From NCBI GenBank assembly GCA_020891255.1, contig BQFW01000001.1:1860001-1924000 (forward strand): a DNA stretch of 64,000 bases, written 5' to 3'. Under the pieces are notes generated by a model. The model was not told the origin of the DNA. It searched no databases and saw only the letters and a program-made list of their open reading frames with translations. This document shows positions 1 to 42,291 of this stretch, piece after piece (position 1 is the stretch's first letter; every line of letters begins with the position of its first letter). The translations under genes were made by a program, and so were the position numbers. Source of the stretch: Entomortierella parvispora E1425 (lineage: Eukaryota > Fungi > Mortierellomycota).

Positions 1-108
1 GCCTTGACCAAGGATTCTGCAGGCGCGAATGTTGTTCTCCGACTCGCTGCAGATATTCCCTCAGACGAACAGTTGTGGAAGATTACGCCTGATCCCCTCC
101 AGGAGTAA
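1..108 (+). CDS. 3' end of a probable beta-trefoil-like small protein, homologous to the array at 31-38 kb (truncated by window edge)
   Basis: Frame 1 reads ALTKDSAGANVVLRLAADIPSDEQLWKITPDPLQE-TAA(106-108). This aligns with array C-termini such as VTLRVSDFPTEDQLWMITPVVN (copy 2). Not in the ORF track because it has no start codon. Confidence 0.6.
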   Translation, partial: ALTKDSAGANVVLRLAADIPSDEQLWKITPDPLQE

Positions 109-9200: not shown

Positions 9201-10527
9201 TTATGGTAACTTTTCGATGCCCCTCCCAGATCTAGAAGAGGAGCCAGAGAACTCACAAGAGGGCGGTTCAGGTAATACAAAGGGCGGTCGCGGTCGCAGT
9301 GGCAGCGGAGCCGGCAGCGGTCGGTCGATCAAGAATTTGAGTACCATTTGGCAAACACAGATTGCGACAGCGGTGGCCATGGCTGCGATTGCTTTTGGAG
9401 GAACAGACCCAGCGCAGGAGCAACAGTTTTTTGCCAGTCCGATGGATTTACCGGAGGCTCTTCGTTTGGCCCACATTGATTCCATGATGATTGCCGATCC
9501 TTTGGGCAGTGGCGTCGGAAGCAGTACCACAGCAATGGGCGGTGGCAACATGGGAGGGTTTGTGGGCGCTGATCTTTCCACGGGCTTTGAAATGTCCCCG
9601 ACTCTTGCCCAGAATCCACAACAGCAGCAGTCAACGCTGCTTCAATATCAGGAACAGCAACCGCCATCTCAACCCCTTCATCAAAGTGTCTTGTTTCAAC
9701 CGTCTGTAATGCAGCAACAACAGCAGCAGCAACAACTACAGCAGCAGCAGCAGCCATATTCACTCTCTACTGGCGACAACAGTTCTTCGAATCCATTCCT
9801 CCCAGCCCATTCTCAGCCCCAGCCCCAGCAAGGCATAATGCAAGAGCTTTCCTCAACACTGAACTCTTCTCTCCATATGAAGGGTGCAGCTTCAACAGTC
9901 CCGACCTTGCCTTCACAATCGGCTGAGCTTCGGTTCCAAGAGCAGATGCAGATGTTTCAGCGTCAGTTCCAAGTTCAACAGCAGCTTCAACAACAGCAAC
10001 AGCAACAGCAACATCAACATCAGCAGCAGCAGCAGCAGCAACAACAACAGGGTCAAAAGCAGCATCATGCCACGATGGAGGACGATGCTGCCGATCCTCC
10101 ATCCCCACCTGCTGTGTCGTCGGACGATATGGACATGGAGTCATCGTCCCTGTCGGATGATCCTGACCGATCTTCACCCACTTCTTCGGCCCCGGCCCCT
10201 CGTCAGGATGCCCAAACCCAGTTTAATTCGTCGGTCACAACCGATGCCGCCACGGAATCGATGAACATCAATCCCTCGGATTCTCTGGTGTCACACGCGT
10301 CGTTTCTTTCCTCGTTGACAACGACGTCTAATCTGTACGGCGAACACCAACGGCAACAGCAGCAGAATCAACAACAGCAGAATCAACAACAACAGCAGCA
10401 ACAGCACCAGCAGCAACAACAGGACGCACAGCAAGGGTCGGCGACCAAGGACGGACAGTTTGGGTGCCATAAAGATGTGGACAGGGTCAATAACCTGTTG
10501 TTTGATGAGCAGGCTATGGAGTGCTGA
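6271..10527 (+). CDS. Zn(II)2Cys6 fungal transcription factor with fungal-specific TF middle domain and polyQ C-terminus
   Basis: Exons 6271-7289, 7488-7552, 7641-8077, 8170-10527, phases checked. Zinc cluster CTNCRRKKLRCTGTPNCTRCVNHKLEC. Middle-homology motifs LLDLYFQYMYP, STVQALLLM, DIGLHR, RKRVWWALYISDR. Several polyQ tracts. Confidence 0.92.
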
Positions 10528-28594: not shown

Positions 28595-30108
28595 ATGCCC
28601 GTCAAAACAATCACCAGCCAGTCCGACTACCAGAGCATCCTCTCGGATGGCGGTGCAACCAAACTTGTAATTAATCGTCTCTTTCATCAGGAGAGGCGCT
28701 TGCGTGCCATGGTCGCGTTATATATAGACAATACATCTTTGCAAAAACTGATTGGTCCCGTCTCTTCATACTCCAATCATAGGTCGTTGTTGACTTTACT
28801 GCTGTAAGATTACCCGTCGGACAATTACAGGATTGACACCAGGAATGGACGAACATTCTGGACTGACATCACCCAAAAAATCACTTTTCTTCTCCATGTA
28901 GGCATGGTGCGGACCTTGCCAAACGATCAAGCCCGTTTTTGAAAAGCTGTCGAACCAGTACCGCCATGTTACATTCGTCAAGGTGAGGCTTTCTCTGGAA
29001 TCTAGACTATGCAAAACAAGGCCTGTTCGTTCGTCCTTTCAGGTACTGATCCATGTTACTGAACGACTCTTCCTTCTCAATTTCACAGGTCGATGTTGAC
29101 GAGTTCCAGGAGGTTGCTGCCGTCGCTGGAGTCACTGCCATGTACGTTTGACTGGATTAAATGGCCACAAGACTGAAGGATGACTCGATGGAAATGGAAG
29201 AGAGAAATATGAAAGAGGCAATCCTAATGAGACGCACTCAATGTCATGGATTTTATTAGGCCTACGTTTCAGTTCTTCAAAGCCTCGAAAAAGATTGCCG
29301 AGATGAAAGGAGCAAACCCAACACAGCTCGAGGCTTTGATCAAGCAACATCAGGGACCCGTGGAAGATGCCGAAGGTGGATCTAGTAGCAGTTCAGCAGG
29401 ATTGGTTGCTGGCCATGGGGATGTCACCGAGATCATTACCTTGAACCAGGTCGACTGCTTGAACCAACAGACTGCCAACCATATCAGGAATGCCCTCAAG
29501 GCGGATGAGACATTTTTGGAGAGTGATGTGGATGAGCAGCTTATCGTCTCGGTTCCTTTCAACCAGGTAAGGCGCCTGTTGCATTGCAAACGAAAGGACT
29601 GACTTTGGGCTGTCGACTCTGAAGACAAGAATAGGCTATACTTGTGATCTTCAGGTTAGAGGTGTTTTAATGACGGAATCATTTCGATGTCTTTTAGGCC
29701 ATCAAACTGCACTCGATCAAGATTGTGCCCAAGGATATTGGTAAGAATCAAGTCAAGGGGATATAGAAACTTTTTCAAGGGGCCGAGTCTGACCAGCGCT
29801 TTCCTCCATTTTTAGCGCATGCGCCAAAGACGATCAAGCTGTATGTGAACAAGCTGACACTTGGATTCGACGAGACTGACAGCGTGGAAGAGACCCAGAC
29901 AATTGTGTTGAGCGAAAAGGAGTACGAGGCCAACGGAGTGATCCCCCTGCGCTTTGTCAAGTTCCAGAACGTCACCAGCGTGATTCTGTTTATCGAGGAT
30001 AACTTGGGAGAGGAAGAGACGACACAGATCAAGCAGCTGATCTTTATCGGAAGCCCTTTGGATAGTACCGACATGTCTGCACTGAAGAAGGTCGAGCACG
30101 ATCACTAA
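28595..30108 (+). CDS. TXNL1: Thioredoxin-like protein 1 (Trx + PITH domain, proteasome-associated Txl1/TXNL1)
   Basis: VVVDFTA|AWCGPC active site, TAMPTFQFFK, PITH motifs [10 protein letters not shown] and [13 protein letters not shown]. Exons 28595-28666, 28783-28803, 28902-28982, 29089-29141, 29260-29566, 29698-29740, 29816-30108. Confidence 0.93.
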
Positions 30109-30976
30109 AAAAGTGTTCATAGTGCATCCCTATTAAAGAATGTTGTCTTGCGCCTGCGTATCTGGTCCCACAGAATTCAGGTCCAACAATGATCACTACC
30201 TGTTGAGGTTCAATCTGATGGCTGGCTTACTGCAGTCGTTATCCTGCGACTGGGGATCTCACTTGTGGTCCACTATTCGCGGCGCCAGTATCACGGAATG
30301 GCAATAGTAACCACACGCCGAGGACGAGGATTGAAATCAAACGTAATTCGCAAGTAGACTGTGGAGAGGTGGTAGGCTCAATCTTTTCATATCATTCCTG
30401 ACTGTTGTTCTAGGACTTCAAAATCCGGTTCCCCTCCGTAAGAAGAAGGGGACAACTGTTACGCAAACTTTGAAATACCAGGAGGTTGATTCTGAGCAAA
30501 AGTTGTCGACCTTCCAGGGGAGTGTCCACCAAAGGCACGACGCAAGTGATACAAGATCGATAGGAGGTTGGCATGAAGCAGCGCAATAGAGTGTAGTTGG
30601 AGGAACCACTCCAGCGCATTTACGCCAATGCGTGCCTGTGCTGGGTGATCATGGGGTGTGTTCAGAAAATGATGTTCGAATAATGGCGCACACGCGCGAC
30701 GTTTCTGCTCAATTCAACAGCGCGGTGCAGTGAATGCCATCAAGTGCCTCTCGAGCAAAACAATGGCACATTTTCCCTACATTATATACGATGTCGGGAT
30801 CTACTCAGCCCACACGACCTGTGCATGTCGTAAACAGGTCAGAGGAAGCCACTATCACAAGTCACACATGCACTGGTCAAGTTAAGAAGACCACTCTGGG
30901 TGGGATACTTTCATTCATCGAAGACTCCTTTTATTGATCTGCTGGTAGTATCTGCGCCTGGGTGGGGACTAGATAT

Positions 30977-31447
30977 TTAGTTATCAGCAGAGTTCAAACT
31001 CCACGTCTGGCTCTCTGTGGGGATCTCTGCGACTTGGATAGTGACGGGGTCGTTCGGCCCGTTGCCCGCAGTCCAGTACCGACCGGGAAAAATCTGAGTT
31101 GTAGCAAGCCTGATGTGGAAAGTGTGCTCTTGTCTGCCGCGGACAATTTCCCATTCCCTCTCCTCAAATAATGACGCAGTCACCACATCATTGTGTCCCA
31201 CTCCGACTTTCGGGGGAGCGTCTTGGATGTGGAGGAGGTAGCGGTTGGTTCCAGTTTGTTCAAAAGTCCACCTGTTCAGAGGCCCGCCGGCGTGAACGGG
31301 CAACGACGGAATCCTGAACGGGTCAACACCAATTGGGCGAGAGCCCGCACGGATGTTTTGAATCTGGTACAGAGTTTGGGCAATTACGACTTGGAGGGAA
31401 ACCACAAGGGTGAACACGAGTGCAAGGAATCGAGTCAGACGCGCCAT
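30977..31447 (-). CDS. Secreted beta-trefoil-like small protein, array copy 1 (156 aa)
   Basis: Intact single coding exon from ATG 31447. Signal peptide MARLTRFLALVFTLVVSLQVVIA, no Cys, three internal repeats each ending in Trp (NRW, REW, QTW). TATA at ~31653-31659; AATAAA downstream. Confidence 0.85.
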   Translation of the reverse strand: MARLTRFLALVFTLVVSLQVVIAQTLYQIQNIRAGSRPIGVDPFRIPSLPVHAGGPLNRWTFEQTGTNRYLLHIQDAPPKVGVGHNDVVTASLFEEREWEIVRGRQEHTFHIRLATTQIFPGRYWTAGNGPNDPVTIQVAEIPTESQTWSLNSADN

Positions 31448-31704
31448 TTCTGACAAGGTTTGGAAAAAAGAATAAAAAATCCAGTTAGGGGATCGTCGTG
31501 AAACTAGAAGTCTGATAGGCGCTAAACACAGTTGTTCCATTACCTGCTTAGAGGGTTGGGTGGATGGGTTGGAGGGTGGTGGATAGGAAGATGTTGTTGT
31601 TGTTGTTGTTGTTGTTTTTTTTTTTTTTTTTTTTTGATGTTCGCCCCATCTCTTTTATACACAAACTCAATGGTAGGAATCAAAAACCAGGAAAAGGCAG
31701 GTAG

Positions 31705-31725
31705 CCTCGAGGTTTCTTTAGTCCC
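31705..31725. promoter_or_regulatory. Conserved promoter motif GCCTCGAGGTTTCTTT(A/G)GTCCC of array copies 1-3
   Basis: The same ~21-mer occurs at ~31704, ~33298 and ~34680, just upstream of each TATA box, while neighbouring bases differ between copies. Confidence 0.45.
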
Positions 31726-32582
31726 AATCCGAGAGCACAGCAGGAGGAAATAGCAGGGATGGAGATAATCCTCCTAGCAGGATCGAGGATAGGCCATGCA
31801 GCATTCCACAAAAAAAAAGGAGTCGAGCAAAGTAAAAAAGATGCTCGAGTTAGCCTTGAGCTGGATGGTTGGAGGAATCGCTCGCAAGCATTCATGCCGA
31901 CGCGTGCCTGAGCTGGGTGATCATGGGATGTGTCTAGAAAACGATGTTCGAATAATGGCGCACAGCAATGCTTCTGCTCAATTCAACAGCGCGGTGCAGT
32001 GAATGCACATCAGGTGCTCTTTGAGCACAACAACGGCACAATAACACCTTTTCCCCACATGAGATACGATGTTAGGATCTACTCGACCCCACACGGCCTG
32101 TGCATGTCGTGGGCATGTCAGAGAATTTTAAACCACTCTCACAAATCACGCATGTACTGGTCAAGTTATTCAAGAAGAGCAAGCTCCTGACAACTTTCAC
32201 GCAGAAGCTTCAGATCAGAGCAATGGCCTATAAGGCTACGCGACGCAATGACCAATAAAAAAAAATAGGTCCTTACTGACTAGCCCTTGCGGGAAATGTC
32301 CTAGACCCATATGTCAATTAGCTTCGGCCGCTCGTGAAAGAGCTGGTTTTCACCGTCATCGTTTTTACGCTTACTAGCGACTGGTTCGAGCTCTTTATTG
32401 TGGAGAGTGAGCGACCTTGGATTTTCCATCAAGACTGAACATCTCTCAATCATCTTGAAGTGCTAACTCCAAAGCCACACGTGCCGATTAAGGACTCTGG
32501 GCAGAATACTTTCATTCATCGAAGATTCCATTTATAGATCTGCCGGTATTATAGTGTCTGTGCCTGGGTGGGGACTAGATAC

Positions 32583-33053
32583 TTAGTTAACGACGGGGGT
32601 AATCATCCACAGCTGGTCCTCTGTGGGGAAGTCTGAGACTCTGAGAGTGACGGTATCGGTAGGCCCGTTTCCCGCAGTCCAGTACTGACCGGGCCACAGG
32701 CCAGTAGCAAGCTGGATGGTGAAAGCGTTCTTTTGACCGTCGCGGACAATTTCCCATACCCTCTTGTCGTCTAATGACGCAGTCACCACACCATTGCCTG
32801 CCACTCCGACATTCGGGGGAGCGTTTTGGATGTGGAGGAAGTAGCGGTTGCTTCCCTCAGTTTTTTCGATAGTCCACTTGTTCAGCTGCGCGCCTTCGCG
32901 AACGGGCAACGACAGAATCTTGAGCGGGTCAACACCAATTGGGTCAGAGCCCGCACGGATGTTTTGAATCTGGTGCAGAGTTTGGGCAATCACGACTTGG
33001 AGGGAAACCACCAGGGTGAATACGAGGACTATGAATTGAGCTAAATGCGTCAT
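32583..33053 (-). CDS. Secreted beta-trefoil-like small protein, array copy 2 (156 aa)
   Basis: Intact ORF MTHLAQFIVLVFTLVVSLQVVIA..., clearly paralogous to copy 1 (QIQNIRAGS.PIGVDP, VVTASL, YWTAGNGP). Confidence 0.88.
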   Translation of the reverse strand: MTHLAQFIVLVFTLVVSLQVVIAQTLHQIQNIRAGSDPIGVDPLKILSLPVREGAQLNKWTIEKTEGSNRYFLHIQNAPPNVGVAGNGVVTASLDDKRVWEIVRDGQKNAFTIQLATGLWPGQYWTAGNGPTDTVTLRVSDFPTEDQLWMITPVVN

Positions 33054-34009
33054 TTCTGATAAGTTGGAAAGAGGAAGAGCGGAAAATCCAGTTAGGGGAT
33101 CGTCATGAAACTAGAAGTCTGATAGGCGCTACACACTGTTATTCCATTACCTGTTTGGAGGGTTGGGTTGATGAGTTGGAGGGTGGTGGATAGGGGGATG
33201 TTTTTTTTTATTTTTTTTTTTTTTTATGTTCGCTCCCTCTCTTTTTATACGCAAGCTCAATGGTACTGTAGGAAACAAAACCAAGAAAAGGAAGGTGGCC
33301 TCGAGGTTTCTTTAGTCCCGTCATAGAGAACTGCAGCAGGAGCGGCCATGCAGGGTTGCACAAAACGGAGACAAAAAAAAAAAGGAGTCGGTATCAGAGA
33401 AGAGGCAGAGGAATGACAGCAAAAAGATCAAGAGAAAAAGAGATGCTCGATTCAGCCTTGAGCTGTGTGCCAGACCGATGGGAGGCCAGCACGAAGCAGC
33501 TCAATAGATTTTGGTTGGAGGAACCACTCGCAGGTATCCATGCCGACGCGTGCTGAGCTGGGTTATCATGGGATGTGTCCAGAAAACGATGTTTGAATAA
33601 TGGCGCACAACGTCCCTCCTCGTTTTTACAAAACAGGGCGCGGTTGCACGAAACGCTTCTGCTCAATTCAACAGTGAATGCCATCAAGTGCTCTTTGAGC
33701 CCGACAATGGCACAATGATACTTTTTCCCTAGATGAGATACGATGTCAGGATCTACTTGGCCCCACACGGCCTGTGCATGTCGTGAGCATGTCGAGCTCT
33801 TTATTGTGGAGAATGGGCGACCGTGAATTTTCCATCAAGACTAAACATCCTCCAATCGCCTTGAAGTTGTAATCCCAAAGCCATATGTGCCGATCAAGGG
33901 CTTGGCAATCCCTCTCTGGGCAGGGTACTTTCATTCGTCGAAACTCCATTTATTGATCTGCTGGAAGGATCTGCGCCTTTGCGGAGACTGGACGTTTGCT
34001 CTTAATGGC

Positions 34010-34478
34010 CTAAAGAAACCTCCACATCTGGTTCTCTGAAGGAGTATTTGTGGCTTGGAGAGTAACGCGGTCGGTAGGCCCGTTGCCCGCAGTCCAGTAC
34101 TGATCGCTACTAGGAAGCTTGATGTAGAAAGGACTCTTTGGCCCCCTATTCTTTTGATCGACTAGGACAATTTCCCATTCCCTCCTCTCGTTGAGAGACC
34201 TTGTTGCAACTACTTCGTCACTGTCCCCCACTCCGACATATGGGGCAGTGTCTAGGATGCGGAGCTTGAAGGTGTTGTCCTCTTCCCCATTTTCAAGTAT
34301 CCACTTTCTGAGAGGTGCGCCCGGCGCGAACGGGCAAGGACAGTCTCTTCAAAGGATCAACACCAATTGGGCTAGAGCCCGCACGGACATTTAGAATCTG
34401 GAGCGCGGCGGCCATCACGACTTGGAGGGAAACCATCAGGGTGAATACGAGGACTAGGAACTGAGCCAGATGCGCCAT
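34010..34478 (-). pseudogene. Array copy 3, frameshifted by a +1 base at ~34320-34322
   Basis: The N-terminus MAHLAQFLVLVFTLMVSLQVV...LSLPVRAG reads into a premature TGA. Removing one base restores APLRKWILENGEEDNTFKLRI...YWTAGNGPTDRVTLQ...QMWRFL. Could be a homopolymer sequencing error. Confidence 0.75.
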
Positions 34479-35959
34479 TTCTGACAAGTTGGAAAAAGGA
34501 AGAAGGAAAAATCCAGTTGAGGGATAGTTGGGAAACTAGAAGTCTGACAGGCGCCGAAGCACAGCTATTCTATTACCTGTATACAGGGTTGGGTGGATGG
34601 GTCAGAGGAATGATGGAAGATGATTTTTTTTTTATCATCGCCTCGTCTCTTCTTATACACAAGCCAAATGGCAGAAACAGCCTCGAGGTTTCTTTGGTCC
34701 CGGTCAGAGATGGCAAGGGGGAAAGAGTAGGGATAGAGTTGGTTACTCCTTGCAGAGCACAAGGGGAAGACAAAAAAAGGCGCTTGAGCTGATATGTCGA
34801 AAGGAGGGGACTGGCACAAAAGCTGCCAGACCTTCTGCCGCTAGTAGAGCCGCTCAAAGTTCAATGGCGTCCCGGAACCAATCGCCGGGGGGCACCATAA
34901 TCCCACTACTGGTCGTAAGCGGTACGGTGTCCAAATATTCTTGACATGACCTGGCCTGGCATGGCCAATCAGTTTGTGTAGAGGCAGTTGAACTACGGGG
35001 TAGGTACACGCTGCCCATTTTTTGATGTGCTCCAAGACCTCGTTCCCTCCTACCCCCAAGCTCATAGACTTGTGCGTAATGAAAAACAAGAACCTATCTT
35101 GCGCGGTTTGTGCAACACATCGCGGTATGGTCATCAGCACTGTGTCTGGATGATTACATACGGTGCCGTCCCTCTTTCTTCACCACCAGGTTGTTGATGC
35201 TCTCTCCTTCTCACCTTTCAGTGACGCGTTCGATGAGATGCCATGCCCCAATGGGGGTTCACTGACCTGTGATTGTTTGTCAATGGGCCAGTTAGACCCA
35301 TCACCATATTTAAAAAGTCCATTGCTCTTGCCCTTTCTTTCAATCCACGTTGTGTCTCTTGCCGAATAAACTCCCAAAGGATGAGTGTTACCTCTGAGTG
35401 GTCAATGGACATGCGTAGATAGCACAGGTCCCAAAATCGCGTGAGGCATGGTTGAAAGGCTATCTTCGGTCCAAATCCGTCACATCCATAGAGCGAGCAT
35501 ATACTCATAAAAGGAGTGCTTGGTTTTCTTCACAGGTGGAAGAGAGGTGTAAAGGATGGAGACGTTGCAGGCAGGTGGTCCCCAAACGAAGTCGAGACCA
35601 GACCCCCCCGTCCAAAAAAAAGACAGACAGAGCTGGCCAAGCAAAGGCCCAAGACATGACAAGCTCCAAAGCCCTGCTCTCATTCCCTCAACGGAACCAG
35701 GGAGTTGTTGTGAACTGTCCCCTGCCTCTGGCCACTCTAATTGCAAGTTAAAAACTGTACCGATCCAAATCCTCCTGTAAAAAGATTGTAGCGCCAATCA
35801 AAGGTCAAGGCATATGAAGAACAAGACTCTAAAAGACATGAGGGTCAACCGAGGAGCAAGAGACACACCACAGGGTATAGAGTCAAGCGAGGGTCTTTTG
35901 TTTTTATTGAGCTCTGGGCAAGACAGTGCTTTGCACAAGAGGGGAAAGAAACACGGCTT

Positions 35960-36436
35960 TTACTCGTCGACAGGGATAAGTTTCCAAAGGTGTTTGTTTG
36001 TAAGAGTGCGAGGGCGTTGAAGAGTGACAATGCTGTCGAGCTCGCCGTTATGCATTCCCCAGAGCGTAGCCGGACGTGCATTCGTTGGCAGTTCGATCGT
36101 GTAAGCATCACGTTCTTTGACATAATTCAATTTCCACTTTTTGTTGTCGGCTGCATTCTTGGTCGCCATCACCAGGTTGTCGTCTACACCAACATATGGG
36201 TAGCTTTCAATAAGACTAAAAAGGAATGTGTTGGGTTCCTTCGTAGGCTTGAGTGACCACTTGTTCACAGGCGAGTCGCCTGCAACCTGCGCCTGTTCTC
36301 CGTCAAAGGAATGGACACCAATTGGACGGGCTTCACGGGCAATATTTTGGATTTGGTACACACGGACCGCAATCGCAACTTGGAGGGAGACCATCGCAGA
36401 GAATGCGAGTACAATGAGTCGAGTCAGAGGCGCCAT
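35960..36436 (-). CDS. Secreted beta-trefoil-like small protein, divergent array copy 4 (158 aa)
   Basis: Real start at MAPLTRLIVLAFSAMVSLQVAIA (ATG 36436). YQIQNI..RPIGV, NKW, KKW, HLW pattern conserved; no Cys. The upstream part of the 337-aa ORF is intron/promoter sequence. Confidence 0.82.
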   Translation of the reverse strand: MAPLTRLIVLAFSAMVSLQVAIAVRVYQIQNIAREARPIGVHSFDGEQAQVAGDSPVNKWSLKPTKEPNTFLFSLIESYPYVGVDDNLVMATKNAADNKKWKLNYVKERDAYTIELPTNARPATLWGMHNGELDSIVTLQRPRTLTNKHLWKLIPVDE

Positions 36437-37355
36437 TGCTTCGACAATAAGATACGTTAGAGTCCAAAATAGAGAGAACATTTTAATGTGTATATCATCC
36501 TTTATGACAAGCGACTGTGGTAACAAATACCTGATTGTCTTGTTCTGGAGGGTGAGATGATGGTTGGATATGAAGAAAGATGATGACTTTCGGACCATTG
36601 CTGTTTCCTTTTTATTACCGAGCATGAGGACAAAAAAGAGCCAAACGAGAAAGATAGGGGCTTGGCGACGCCAGGCAAAAGCAGAATACGAAGAGTATGT
36701 CCTCGGGAAAAAAAACAAAAGGGGAGGGCTTGTACCAGGAAATGTGGGCTGGGGGAGAGGAAGACTGCAGGCAAGAGCAGAGTGAGGGAGAAGACCGAAA
36801 AGATCAAAGAACAAAAATAGGAGACGCAAAAACGGCAAAGACAAAAAAAGGTGAGAAGCGCCCAGCGGCAAAGAGGAGTTGACAGTGATGATAAAAAAAA
36901 AAAAAAAAAAAGGGCGCGGAGAACCATGCGCAGGAAGCTCGACACGACAGGATGGTTGCAGTCTTGGTGACATCTATTTATCTATTTAAATCGCTTCGGC
37001 GCAGCTAACATGGAGATCAACAGGGGTCACTGCGCCGGTTGCCAATCCTAAAATTGCGACCCCAGCGTGGATTGCAATCAAGTCTTTTTCTTGGGCAGCA
37101 TAGCCTTGGTTGCAGCTTCTTCCCGCCACTCTCTCCTCAACCATTCGTTGCACCGTTTCTCGGAGCGATTCCGGGGAAGAATTGGTCTCAATTTTTAGCC
37201 TATGTGGTCTTGAAGTTGATGGTACAAATGATCCATTGTGTCTAAAGGTCAGTAAACATTTGCTACGCCTTCCAAAGGTCATTCATGAGGCAAATAAGGA
37301 CACTTTATTTTGTGGGTCATTGACCGCAAGGGCTTGGTTGCAAAAGACCTTGGTT

Positions 37356-37806
37356 TTACAACTCGACAGGAATAAGCCTCGAAAGGTGATCGGGTCCAGG
37401 ATTGTCGGAGGGTCGAAGATTGACGGAGATCTCCTCTGCCTCGCCTTTAATAGACCAGTATTCACGAGTCCATGCACCCAGCCGGGGGACAACTTTGATC
37501 ATGTAAACACCATCATCTTTGGTTAGCAGAATTACCCATTCCTTGCTGCCATACGCTTCAAGGGATGCAGTCACCCTTGAGGCAGTATATGTGGTCTTTC
37601 CAAGTTTTTTTTTTTTTTATTTTTTTTTTTCAATTTCCCACTTGTTCGCAAGCGTAGCCAATGGGTTGTCATGGCTTCAGATCGTCGCTCCGAGTGGACT
37701 GCTTCCTTGGAGCGTGCCTACAGTCTGGCATTCCCAGAAATGTCTGGCAATCACGTATTGGAGTAAGAACACTGCCGAGAGTGCGATCACAAGTCGAATA
37801 CGCCAT
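37356..37806 (-). pseudogene. Array copy 5, decayed
   Basis: ATG 37806 is followed by a frameshift. The other frame reads RLVIALSAVFLLQYVIA...GSSPLGATI*SHDNPLATLANKWEIEKKK*KKKK...VTASLEAYGSKEW...EYWSIKG...LIPVEL, with two in-frame stops and a poly(A) expansion. Confidence 0.75.
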
Positions 37807-39578
37807 TACTGGGACAGTGAAATAAATCCGAGTCTGGGATATTATCGACAAGACGCGACACCGGGCTGGGACAGAAAAAGGAGCGGAGAGGGAGATGGCA
37901 GCCAAAAGAAACGAGGGAAGAGCCAAGTGCGCTGAAAGGAAGAGATCTCAGGGCAAGAACCACTTCGCGCAGGGTCCAAAAAAAAATGTCGCTAGTCTGG
38001 AAGACATGCGGATGCCTGTCCCAGAGATCAGGAGGGGTTTCATAGTGTAAACAATTCTTGTGGGGCTCGAGTAGAGTAGAGCCCCCTTTGTCCACCACAA
38101 AGTTGCTGCGGTCGCGCGTCCCTCCCTTCCTAGAGTGCATCATCTTGTTCGCAATTACTTTCTGAGGCGATCCAACTCAGTGATGTCTTGTGGGGCTTCT
38201 GTAGGCAGACCGACTCTCTGCTCAAATGATTTAGCCACCCTCCTAGACTTGATGGAGTGGATTTTCGGACTACCGATAGCTGTGATTGTTCGATCCAACT
38301 GTCTCCACAGGGGAAAGGCAAGAAAAAAGACTGAAGGAAATATGTATGTGGAAGGGGACAACCTTGAACAGAACCTAAATCAATTGGATAGTGGAGCGAC
38401 CAGGGGCAGATACAAAGCCTCATCAGCAAGGAGAATCAGATGCAGGTAGGACCAATAAAGTGTAGAGGAGAAAGAAGAACCAGACTTCAAGTGGCGAGTT
38501 AGGGTTGGCACATGCCTGCTTACTTCAAAACATCATCACGACTTGAGGAGCACATCGCTCGGTCTGGTGTTGGGCTCTGTTGAGTTGACCGCGTCTCCTT
38601 TGGAGGCAAGACTCCAGGCCGTGTTTGACGCGGTTTCAAATTTCAGAAATGGCTGCAGTCGGCCAAATGAGCATTTCGTGCCTGAAGTGCCTCAAGCCAC
38701 AAAATTTGTCCCAGTGCCTTTGCCTCTCTTCACACGTCTGAACGAGTCACGTCCCTCCTTGACTGTTGTGCCCAAATGAATACAGAAAGAGTTGAAAATC
38801 CGTCGCATCCAAAGGGGGGCAGTCGTCCAAACCATCTGGACAGAGCAAGTCAGACACGGTTCAAGTTTTGAGCCAACTATATGAATGTATGTCTGACCAA
38901 GCGCCGACGATGGGGATATTGGGAAGATATCATCGTTATCCTTCTCAGTAACTCTGAGGATTTCAGATCAATTCCAGCGTTCTCTGTTCTTTATAGAGCT
39001 CACTCAGACCCAGAGGTGAAGGTTGATCCATCTGTACCTAACAGGCTCACCTCCAAAGACAGTATCCTCCGTGTTTCTTATAGTGGGCTGCTGACATCGC
39101 GAATGGATTATGGTGAAGGGTGACCAGATCTCGAGAAATGCAAAAAACATGAATAGACCGTTGTGCCGACATGCCAGGAAAACAGTAAATGACGGGATGT
39201 TTGCCTTGCCATCAAGTCACGTTTGTTGTGCTGCCAGAAGCCACTGAGAAGGACTGTATCCCTGCTTCCCCTGTAAAGCAAAAAAAAAAAAGGGGGGGGG
39301 GGGGGGAGAAGGGAGTTCCAGAGCGTGCATCTTTTTTCCTTTCTTTGATATATCCTCGAGCGTGTCTTTCTTCTCACCTCCCCTCTCTTAACTCCCCTGT
39401 CAACAAGGCATTCCAATTTCCGCGGGGGTATGTCGTTGATGTTTATAATCTCTGAAGACTGGGTGGGGTTGACCGACCAAAAAAAAAAAAAAAAAGACGG
39501 TCAACTGTCTTTTCTTTCTTGCTCATTCATCGTTCCAATCACTTCTACTGGGTCGTTCTTTGCGTCCACTACCGTGCA

Positions 39579-42291
<2,713 letters not shown>

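Follow-up and report, generated by a model that had tools for sequence, protein, structure and literature searches.

What kind of protein is encoded, copy after copy, between two conserved genes of a soil mould, and what might it do? The copies in question lie in a stretch of 64,000 nucleotides from Entomortierella parvispora E1425 (contig BQFW01000001.1, positions 1,860,001 to 1,924,000 of the forward strand), here called the window, in whose numbering positions are given unless another sequence is named. A first-pass annotation, made from the letters of the window, had described five co-oriented paralogs of about 156 to 158 residues at 30977-37806 and had proposed that they are secreted beta-trefoil proteins. 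All five are present, and all lie on the minus strand. The size given for them is right for c1, c2 and c4, which are intact, and does not hold for c3, which is frameshifted, or for c5, which is decayed:

c1, 30977..31447, minus strand: intact, single exon, 156 residues; signal peptide at residues 1-23, mature trefoil at 24-156 (from the open reading frame and its translation)
c2, 32583..33053, minus strand: intact, single exon, 156 residues; signal peptide at residues 1-23, then the mature trefoil
c3, 34010..34478, minus strand: broken, with a frameshift, an altered signal-peptide cleavage region, a 15-base insertion and an early stop (from three-frame translation and DNA alignment)
c4, 35960..36436, minus strand: intact, single exon, 158 residues
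c5, 37356..37806, minus strand: decayed; 8 bases are deleted directly 3' of the ATG, two stops interrupt the frame (at 37679-37677 and 37619-37617), and there is an A-rich tract

None of the three intact proteins contains Cys, as had been said of their mature chains, and their Trp positions (60, 99-101, 125-126 and 149-151) agree with the Trp spacing of 37/39/50 that the annotation had counted along the mature chain. Judged by sequence, the array is a divergent, probably secreted and locally expanding branch of a known kind of protein, and not a new system; c2 is already tagged as I66 by automated Pfam annotation.

Fold, signal peptide and family

The array proteins are predicted to be beta-trefoils, the fold that had been proposed for them. 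An AlphaFold model of c2, built from an alignment of 25 relatives, has a mean predicted local distance difference test score (pLDDT) of 89 and twelve strands in three similar groups; its residues 5-16 form a low-confidence helix outside the trefoil domain. Foldseek matches to this model in the PDB, like those compared by VIA-align, are exclusively trefoils. With VIA-align, ThreeFoil, the Clitocybe nebularis lectin CNL, cocaprin 1, Rhizoctonia agglutinin, HA33 and cospin all reach Z 16-17, with a root-mean-square deviation (rmsd) of 2.0-2.3 over 121-127 residues; cospin (3N0K) itself gives Z 16.3 and rmsd 2.0 over 124 aligned residues. The ESM Atlas model of c2 agrees; the cluster that comes structurally nearest to it is a basidiomycete one, with Inhibitor_I66 in 36% of its members.

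Ahead of the trefoil domain, residues 1-23 begin with a basic stretch, continue with a hydrophobic core of mean Kyte-Doolittle 2.3-2.8 and end in V/A-x-A just ahead of the predicted cleavage, and we infer that the array proteins are secreted. The signal-peptide ending that the annotation had written as (S/L)LQ..IA, altered in the third copy, is kept as SLQV(V/A)IA in c1, c2 and c4 and is changed in c3. Its remark that mushroom relatives lack such a leader also stands, in that none of the sampled basidiomycete homologs has a signal peptide; their chains open with the first trefoil strand. Among ten members with a signal peptide, drawn from all three clades of the family, the signal peptide has a mean identity of 48% versus 28% for the mature chain, and in 43 of the 45 pairs the signal peptide is the better conserved of the two. 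The consensus for the Mortierellaceae trefoil proteins is M-A-R-L-T-R-L-x-A-L-x-L-x-A-V-x-S-L-Q-A-V-x-A. That this peptide might simply be common in the genome was considered and rejected: a genome search with it, of limited sensitivity, matched c1-c3 only.

I66, one of the families that had been suggested, is the nearest described one. Against the curated cut-off of 27 bits for Pfam Inhibitor_I66 (PF16850), c2 scores 30.9 bits. This is the best or sole Pfam match for c1 and c2, while for c4 it ties with Botulinum HA-17, and 20 of the 25 aligned relatives match it, the best at 1e-17. A family-wide profile finds cospin (E 3e-7) and CNL (E 1.5e-6) in the PDB, and a profile of the cospin-like sister clade finds cospin with E 1.8e-12. 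The family is rare: a HMMER search of 1.84 billion representative proteins with a profile of the window copies returned 30 proteins at E <= 0.001, and NCBIfam has no family for any member. Other searches yielded less. A word-indexed homolog search with c2 returned c2 and c1 only, a single-sequence search of the PDB with c1 returned nothing at E up to 10, and a later homolog search returned 28 cospin-clade proteins, cospin itself not among them. A literature search on Mortierella trefoil or I66 proteins and on the locus tags of the homologs found nothing relevant.

Sources were looked up for 20 single-domain representatives of the 30 proteins. The relatives with a signal peptide come from Mortierellaceae (Podila verticillata, P. 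horticola, P. humilis, Linnemannia elongata, Mortierella spp. and Haplosporangium), where Linnemannia zychae P0013 is an exception in having none. Those without one come from Basidiomycota (Boletus, Imleria, Gyrodon, Paxillus and Leucocoprinus), and a few relatives come from Nocardia and bear the NCBI label 'I66 family serine proteinase inhibitor'. These near relatives place the genome in Mortierellaceae, in line with the early-diverging soil fungus that the annotation had surmised as the source. Trees resolve three clades. The window copies fall in a Mortierellaceae-only clade that stands together with a cospin-like clade, the branch to the third clade being supported at 100/99-100. What distinguishes the cospin-like clade is a loop insertion, P-S-x-P-P-x-Y, that precedes the last strand, close to the C-terminus. 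Because a profile made from the window copies alone misses cospin and prefers lectin-type ricin-B domains, the array is filed here as a probable Mortierellaceae-specific sister subfamily of MEROPS/Pfam I66, and not among its plain members.

A putative reactive loop and the lectin alternative

The residue-45 loop of c2 lies between modelled strands 38-41 and 50-53, where 10-residue blocks have mean pLDDT 91 and 97, and it was compared in an alignment of 35 proteins of the window clade and the cospin-like clade. In the cospin clade the loop after strand 2 reads G-V-N-L-T-x-P, where x is the column of c2 residue 45 (residue 26-29 in the proteins without a signal peptide) and the flanks are conserved. 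Of 29 cospin-clade proteins, 16 have R/K and 11 have L/Y/F in this column; R/K and L/Y/F are the residues that occupy P1, the specificity position, of canonical serine-protease inhibitors. The column often differs between close Boletus or Tylopilus paralogs. In c1-c3 the loop is framed by prolines, G-V-D-P-x-[R/K]-[I/R]-x-S-L-P-V, with Arg45 in c1 (codon 31313-31315) and Lys45 in c2 (codon 32919-32921) as the predicted P1 residues, and Lys again in c3. Cospin is a trypsin-specific trefoil inhibitor with its reactive site in an unusual place. Its reactive residue is reportedly Arg27, on the loop that joins strands 2 and 3. Residue 45 is thus a candidate for the protease-binding P1 residue in c1-c3.

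A separate observation concerns the Boletales, which have many cospin-clade paralogs (about ten in Boletus edulis; Tylopilus felleus P0050-P0052 and P0064, locus tags 010274-010286). Some of these have neighbouring locus tags, and among them the putative P1 column is R/K in some and L/Y in others, over constant flanks.

We tentatively read the array as encoding secreted I66-type serine-protease inhibitors of the canonical-loop kind with trypsin-like targets, a reading that we place a little short of an even chance. The 23-residue signal peptide would direct a protein of about 15 kDa out of the hypha, and the rigid loop that links strands 2 and 3, framed by prolines, would dock like a substrate in the active site of a trypsin-like serine protease, with Arg45 or Lys45 serving as P1 in the way that Arg27 is said to do in cospin. 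The proteases blocked could be foreign ones (of grazers, bacteria or mycoparasites) or the extracellular proteases of the fungus itself. Because c4 has Asp at the loop position, its target, if it has one, would differ from those of c1-c3. It is in this conditional sense that we infer protease inhibition, the identity of P1, an ecological role and a role in defence.

Several results weigh against protease inhibition. In the Pfam comparison, c1 (23.8 bits) and c4 (19.6 bits) stay under the I66 cut-off. The best PDB matches of the window-only profile are lectin-type ricin-B domains (the mosquitocidal toxin MTX at 7e-7, HA33 at 0.01 and RSA at 0.7), and cospin is not recovered by this profile at E up to 1. 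The P-S-x-P-P-x-Y insertion of the cospin-like clade is missing from the window subfamily. At the residue-45 column itself, c4 and its Mortierella claussenii ortholog have Asp and P0004 has Gln. Neither the family profile nor the sister-clade profile ever aligned cospin residues 1-40 by sequence, so that column 45 is equated with cospin Arg27 presumptively, by matching residue numbers and by the reported place of Arg27. Structural ranking was tried as a discriminator between lectin and inhibitor and was rejected: since the trefoil families tie at Z 16-17, structure alone cannot separate the two. Lastly, the excess of amino-acid change between c1 and c2 (see below) is not significant alone (two-sided p ~0.1).

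Some of these results suit a different function. The array may instead encode secreted lectins of the ricin-B type, like CNL, MpL and CCL2, which would bind glycans of nematodes, arthropods, bacteria or the fungus's own wall and whose paralogs would diversify in sugar specificity; we regard this as possible, if on the unlikely side. The preference of the window-only profile for lectin-type domains speaks for it, as does CNL, which has the best TM-score of all matches to the c2 model (0.72/0.75) and a near-best Z of 17.0, besides being found by the family profile. Most of the language-model neighbours are clusters labelled 'Ricin B lectin', the sequences contain QxW-like Trp motifs (NKW, RVW and QLW), and c1-c3 have an Asp after strand 2 (Asp42), the usual spot of the sugar-anchoring Asp. 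The binding residues of a lectin are nevertheless hard to find in c1 and c2. When the sequences are set against CNL, no repeat of either protein has the full canonical set, and Asp20, Asn38 and Asn46 of CNL are unmatched as a set. The alpha repeat has Leu instead of Asn at Trp-3, no aromatic platform is seen and strand 3 has no aromatic residue, and HMMER aligns CNL Asp20 with Gly40 of the family, not with Asp42. As core residues, the QxW Trp residues are uninformative about binding. The nearest Pfam sequence family is, moreover, I66; RicinB_lectin_2 scores 14.6 bits in c2, below its cut-off of 25.6, and has no match in c1 or c4. In the beta repeat of c4, read in the same way against CNL, an Asp and an Asn do stand at the expected sugar-binding offsets.

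Duplication, decay and constraint at the locus

Beyond the five copies, the following features belong to the locus and its surroundings:

1..108 of the window, plus strand: 3' end of a sixth copy, decayed (from a whole-assembly profile search, open reading frames and translation)
29246..30108, plus strand: last exons of a PITH-domain (TXNL1-like) gene (Pfam PITH, 68 + 46 bits)
30500..34700, no strand: tandem segmental duplication of three units (from direct repeats and unit alignment)
39519..42032, plus strand: exons of a GH47 alpha-mannosidase gene (Pfam Glyco_hydro_47, 196 + 129 bits)

The Pfam matches identify the two flanking genes as those that the annotation had named, TXNL1 and GH47. 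The sixth copy had escaped it. A profile search that covered all 20 contigs of the assembly (38.9 Mb) recovered this copy at G000:C1:1859663-1860108 (L014:1324-1770); it reaches 338 bases beyond the upstream edge of the window, has its 3' end at window position 108 and lies on the strand opposite to the array, at a distance of 31 kb. In translation, the C-terminal two thirds of it can still be read; the N-terminal part is divided between two frames and shows no signal peptide. With this addition the locus comprises six copies, three of them intact. The frameshift in c3 is a 1-base insertion in a G/C-rich stretch near 34319-34326, and c3 also lacks one codon at the signal-peptide cleavage site. 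The extra base extends a short G run, and the frameshift may be an assembly error.

Local amplification, as the annotation had claimed, is evident in c1-c3. These three lie in tandem units of about 1.4-1.6 kb, each holding the gene with upstream and downstream DNA, at 80-90% nucleotide identity, and the direct-repeat families D1-D20 recur at spacings of 1606 and about 1425. The fourth and fifth copies are much older. At the protein level c1 and c2 are only 34-35% identical to c4, with a synonymous divergence (dS) above 1, and c4 is evidently the older, conserved paralog. Compared with its ortholog in M. claussenii, it has 78% identity and a ratio of nonsynonymous to synonymous divergence (dN/dS) of 0.39, which departs from neutrality (p 0.001); by these figures c4 is a working gene under purifying selection.

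Upstream of the ATGs of c1, c2 and c3, at a distance of about 150-225 bases, there is a plus-strand T run (an A run on the gene strand) at 31610-31673, 33199-33263 and 34624-34671. It has been kept within the duplicated unit and may be a promoter element.

Between c1 and c2, in the mature chain, dS is 0.12 and dN is 0.24 (ratio ~2.0); in the signal peptide, dN/dS is 0.26. The coding DNA is 82% identical and the upstream DNA 80%. There are two indels in the coding DNA, both of 3 bases, against 13 in 559 upstream bases, of which 12 are not multiples of three. No stop codon has arisen despite 86 substitutions. The absence of frame-breaking indels and stops, taken with the high dN/dS, indicates that the frames of c1 and c2 have been kept while their amino acids changed quickly, and it is in this form that the diversification claimed by the annotation is upheld. 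The differences show no concentration in loops relative to strands (Fisher p 0.72), and among the repeats the third varies most.

A contig of M. claussenii (L015, 8269 bases) was compared with window 30558-36737. It carries the c4 ortholog at L015:3758-4234 together with matching spacer DNA. About 170 bases take the place of the c3 gene of the window and its surroundings; the spacer there directly abuts the element of which the window has a repeat downstream of each of c1, c2 and c3, and this 8.3-kb contig has no gene of the c1-c3 type. The Podila and Linnemannia homologs are single genes at unrelated loci. The annotation had called the array an accessory island, a claim that these comparisons test in part.

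A reader might take these data to mean that the array is decaying and functionless, with c1-c3 as drifting duplicates of c4 and the high dN/dS as relaxed constraint. Three of the six copies are already broken, the c1/c2 ratio is not significantly different from 1, coding and upstream DNA have diverged equally, and M. claussenii has no c1-c3-type gene at the syntenic site. We nonetheless consider this quite improbable. At the upstream rate, about ten frame-breaking indels would be expected in the 468-base coding region, and 0 are seen; in a simple neutral simulation, the frame stays open through 86 substitutions in 8% of the trials; the signal peptide has been conserved; and c4 is clearly constrained. 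As we see the history of the putative inhibitors, c1-c3 stem from recent tandem duplication and are diversifying, with c3, c5 and the sixth copy in decay, in a birth-and-death pattern.

Other trefoil lineages and known systems

In this fungus, trefoil gene clusters appear to be spread genome-wide, with clusters of ricin-B-type genes on contigs 4, 7, 8 and 15. The one on contig 7 (G000:C7:2163621-2170996) is a second tandem cluster, of three intact trefoil genes that encode proteins of 184-185 residues, all with signal peptides. RicinB_lectin_2 is above its cut-off in two of these three proteins and I66 is just below its own; the three share the C-terminal tail G-G-M-Y-G-K-S-R-F-N-x-Q-C-x-L and are remote from the window copies (BLASTP E 0.013). 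Further RicinB_lectin_2 matches, several in tandem and some with internal stops, lie at C15:932110-937183, C4:972398-974270, C8:2803083-2806377 and 2914676, C12:319059 and C5:1752901.

The grouping of the signal-peptide-bearing Mortierellaceae proteins as one clade was rejected on the mature-domain columns (log-likelihood difference 108; approximately unbiased test, p 3e-9), for a group that was named post hoc, after the first tree had been seen, and that took in L. zychae P0013 with no signal peptide. Four Nocardia I66-type trefoils (P0009, P0016, P0044 and P0055), one of them with a bacterial-type signal peptide, nest among the fungal sequences of the cospin-like clade and are candidates for inter-kingdom gene transfer. 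The shared signal peptide, the want of a single clade and the nested Nocardia proteins could together be the outcome of gene transfer in which a signal-peptide cassette was reused, or of secretion having been lost more than once in mushrooms.

A broader proposal, unlikely as matters stand, is that the Mortierellaceae have made an extracellular arsenal of a trefoil family that is intracellular in mushrooms, in several deeply separated lineages, each with its nearer kin among basidiomycete or Nocardia proteins, that all keep one unusually conserved, homologous signal peptide and let the mature chain and P1 vary freely. Such a layout, if real, would be that of venom and antimicrobial-peptide gene superfamilies. 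It would also imply either repeated transfer between soil fungi and actinomycetes with capture of a resident signal-peptide cassette, or secretion lost repeatedly in mushrooms.

To our knowledge, fungal trefoil defence proteins (cospin, cnispin, mycocypins, cocaprins, CNL and CCL2) are known almost only from mushroom fruiting bodies. In mushrooms they work intracellularly and act when the tissue is eaten. The present locus places the family also in an early-diverging soil mould, where it carries a predicted secretion signal and has been duplicated, diversified and discarded locally. If active, the proteins would inhibit proteases outside the cell through specificity loops that vary naturally, and would be relevant to the conflicts of fungi with grazers and bacteria and to the discovery of stable protease inhibitors.

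How, then, does the array compare with systems already described? Mucoricin (Rhizopus delemar RLT1), which Rhizopus hyphae shed, is a single-domain, ricin-B-like protein of about 17 kDa and reportedly inactivates ribosomes and damages cells. That the array encodes a cell-damaging toxin of this sort is very improbable: the fold, the similar size, the early-diverging fungal source and the secreted or shed location are common to both, and the mucoricin paper reports Mortierella orthologs, but none of the 20 source-checked single-domain representatives is from Mucorales, and proteins of the mucoricin type are annotated as ricin-B lectins, a description that the other RicinB_lectin_2 genes of this genome fit better. 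The likeness is that of a small ricin-B-like protein shed or secreted by an early-diverging fungus; no sequence link emerged from the profile search, of which a direct comparison was not part, and the activity of mucoricin is not protease inhibition.

The cocaprins of Coprinopsis cinerea (I106; PDB 7ZNX) have a trefoil inhibitor fold (Z 16.9 against the c2 model), are encoded by three tandem genes within 4 kb and use the loop between strands 2 and 3 for inhibition. They differ in having no signal peptide and in their targets, which are cysteine and aspartic proteases instead of serine proteases, and no sequence relation specific to them and the window proteins was found. CNL (PDB 3NBC/3NBE; related to MpL, RSA and CCL2) resembles the window proteins in fold, size, lack of Cys and QxW-type Trp. 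It is a cytoplasmic dimer without a signal peptide, and its sugar-binding residues are those that c1 and c2 do not match as a set.

The known system nearest to the putative inhibitors is cospin (PIC1 of Coprinopsis cinerea; PDB 3N0K/3VWC), together with cnispin. Cospin is cytoplasmic, whereas the window proteins have a signal peptide. They also lack its clade's P-S-x-P-P-x-Y insertion, stay below the I66 cut-off in c1 and c4, and yield a window-only profile that misses cospin. Their source is Mortierellomycota and not Agaricomycetes, and they form a tandem birth-and-death array. What the two have in common is a single-domain, Cys-free trefoil of about 15 kDa, a significant I66 match in c2, a family profile that reaches cospin at E 3e-7, and, in c1-c3, a basic residue on the loop that joins strands 2 and 3, the presumed place of cospin's reactive Arg27.

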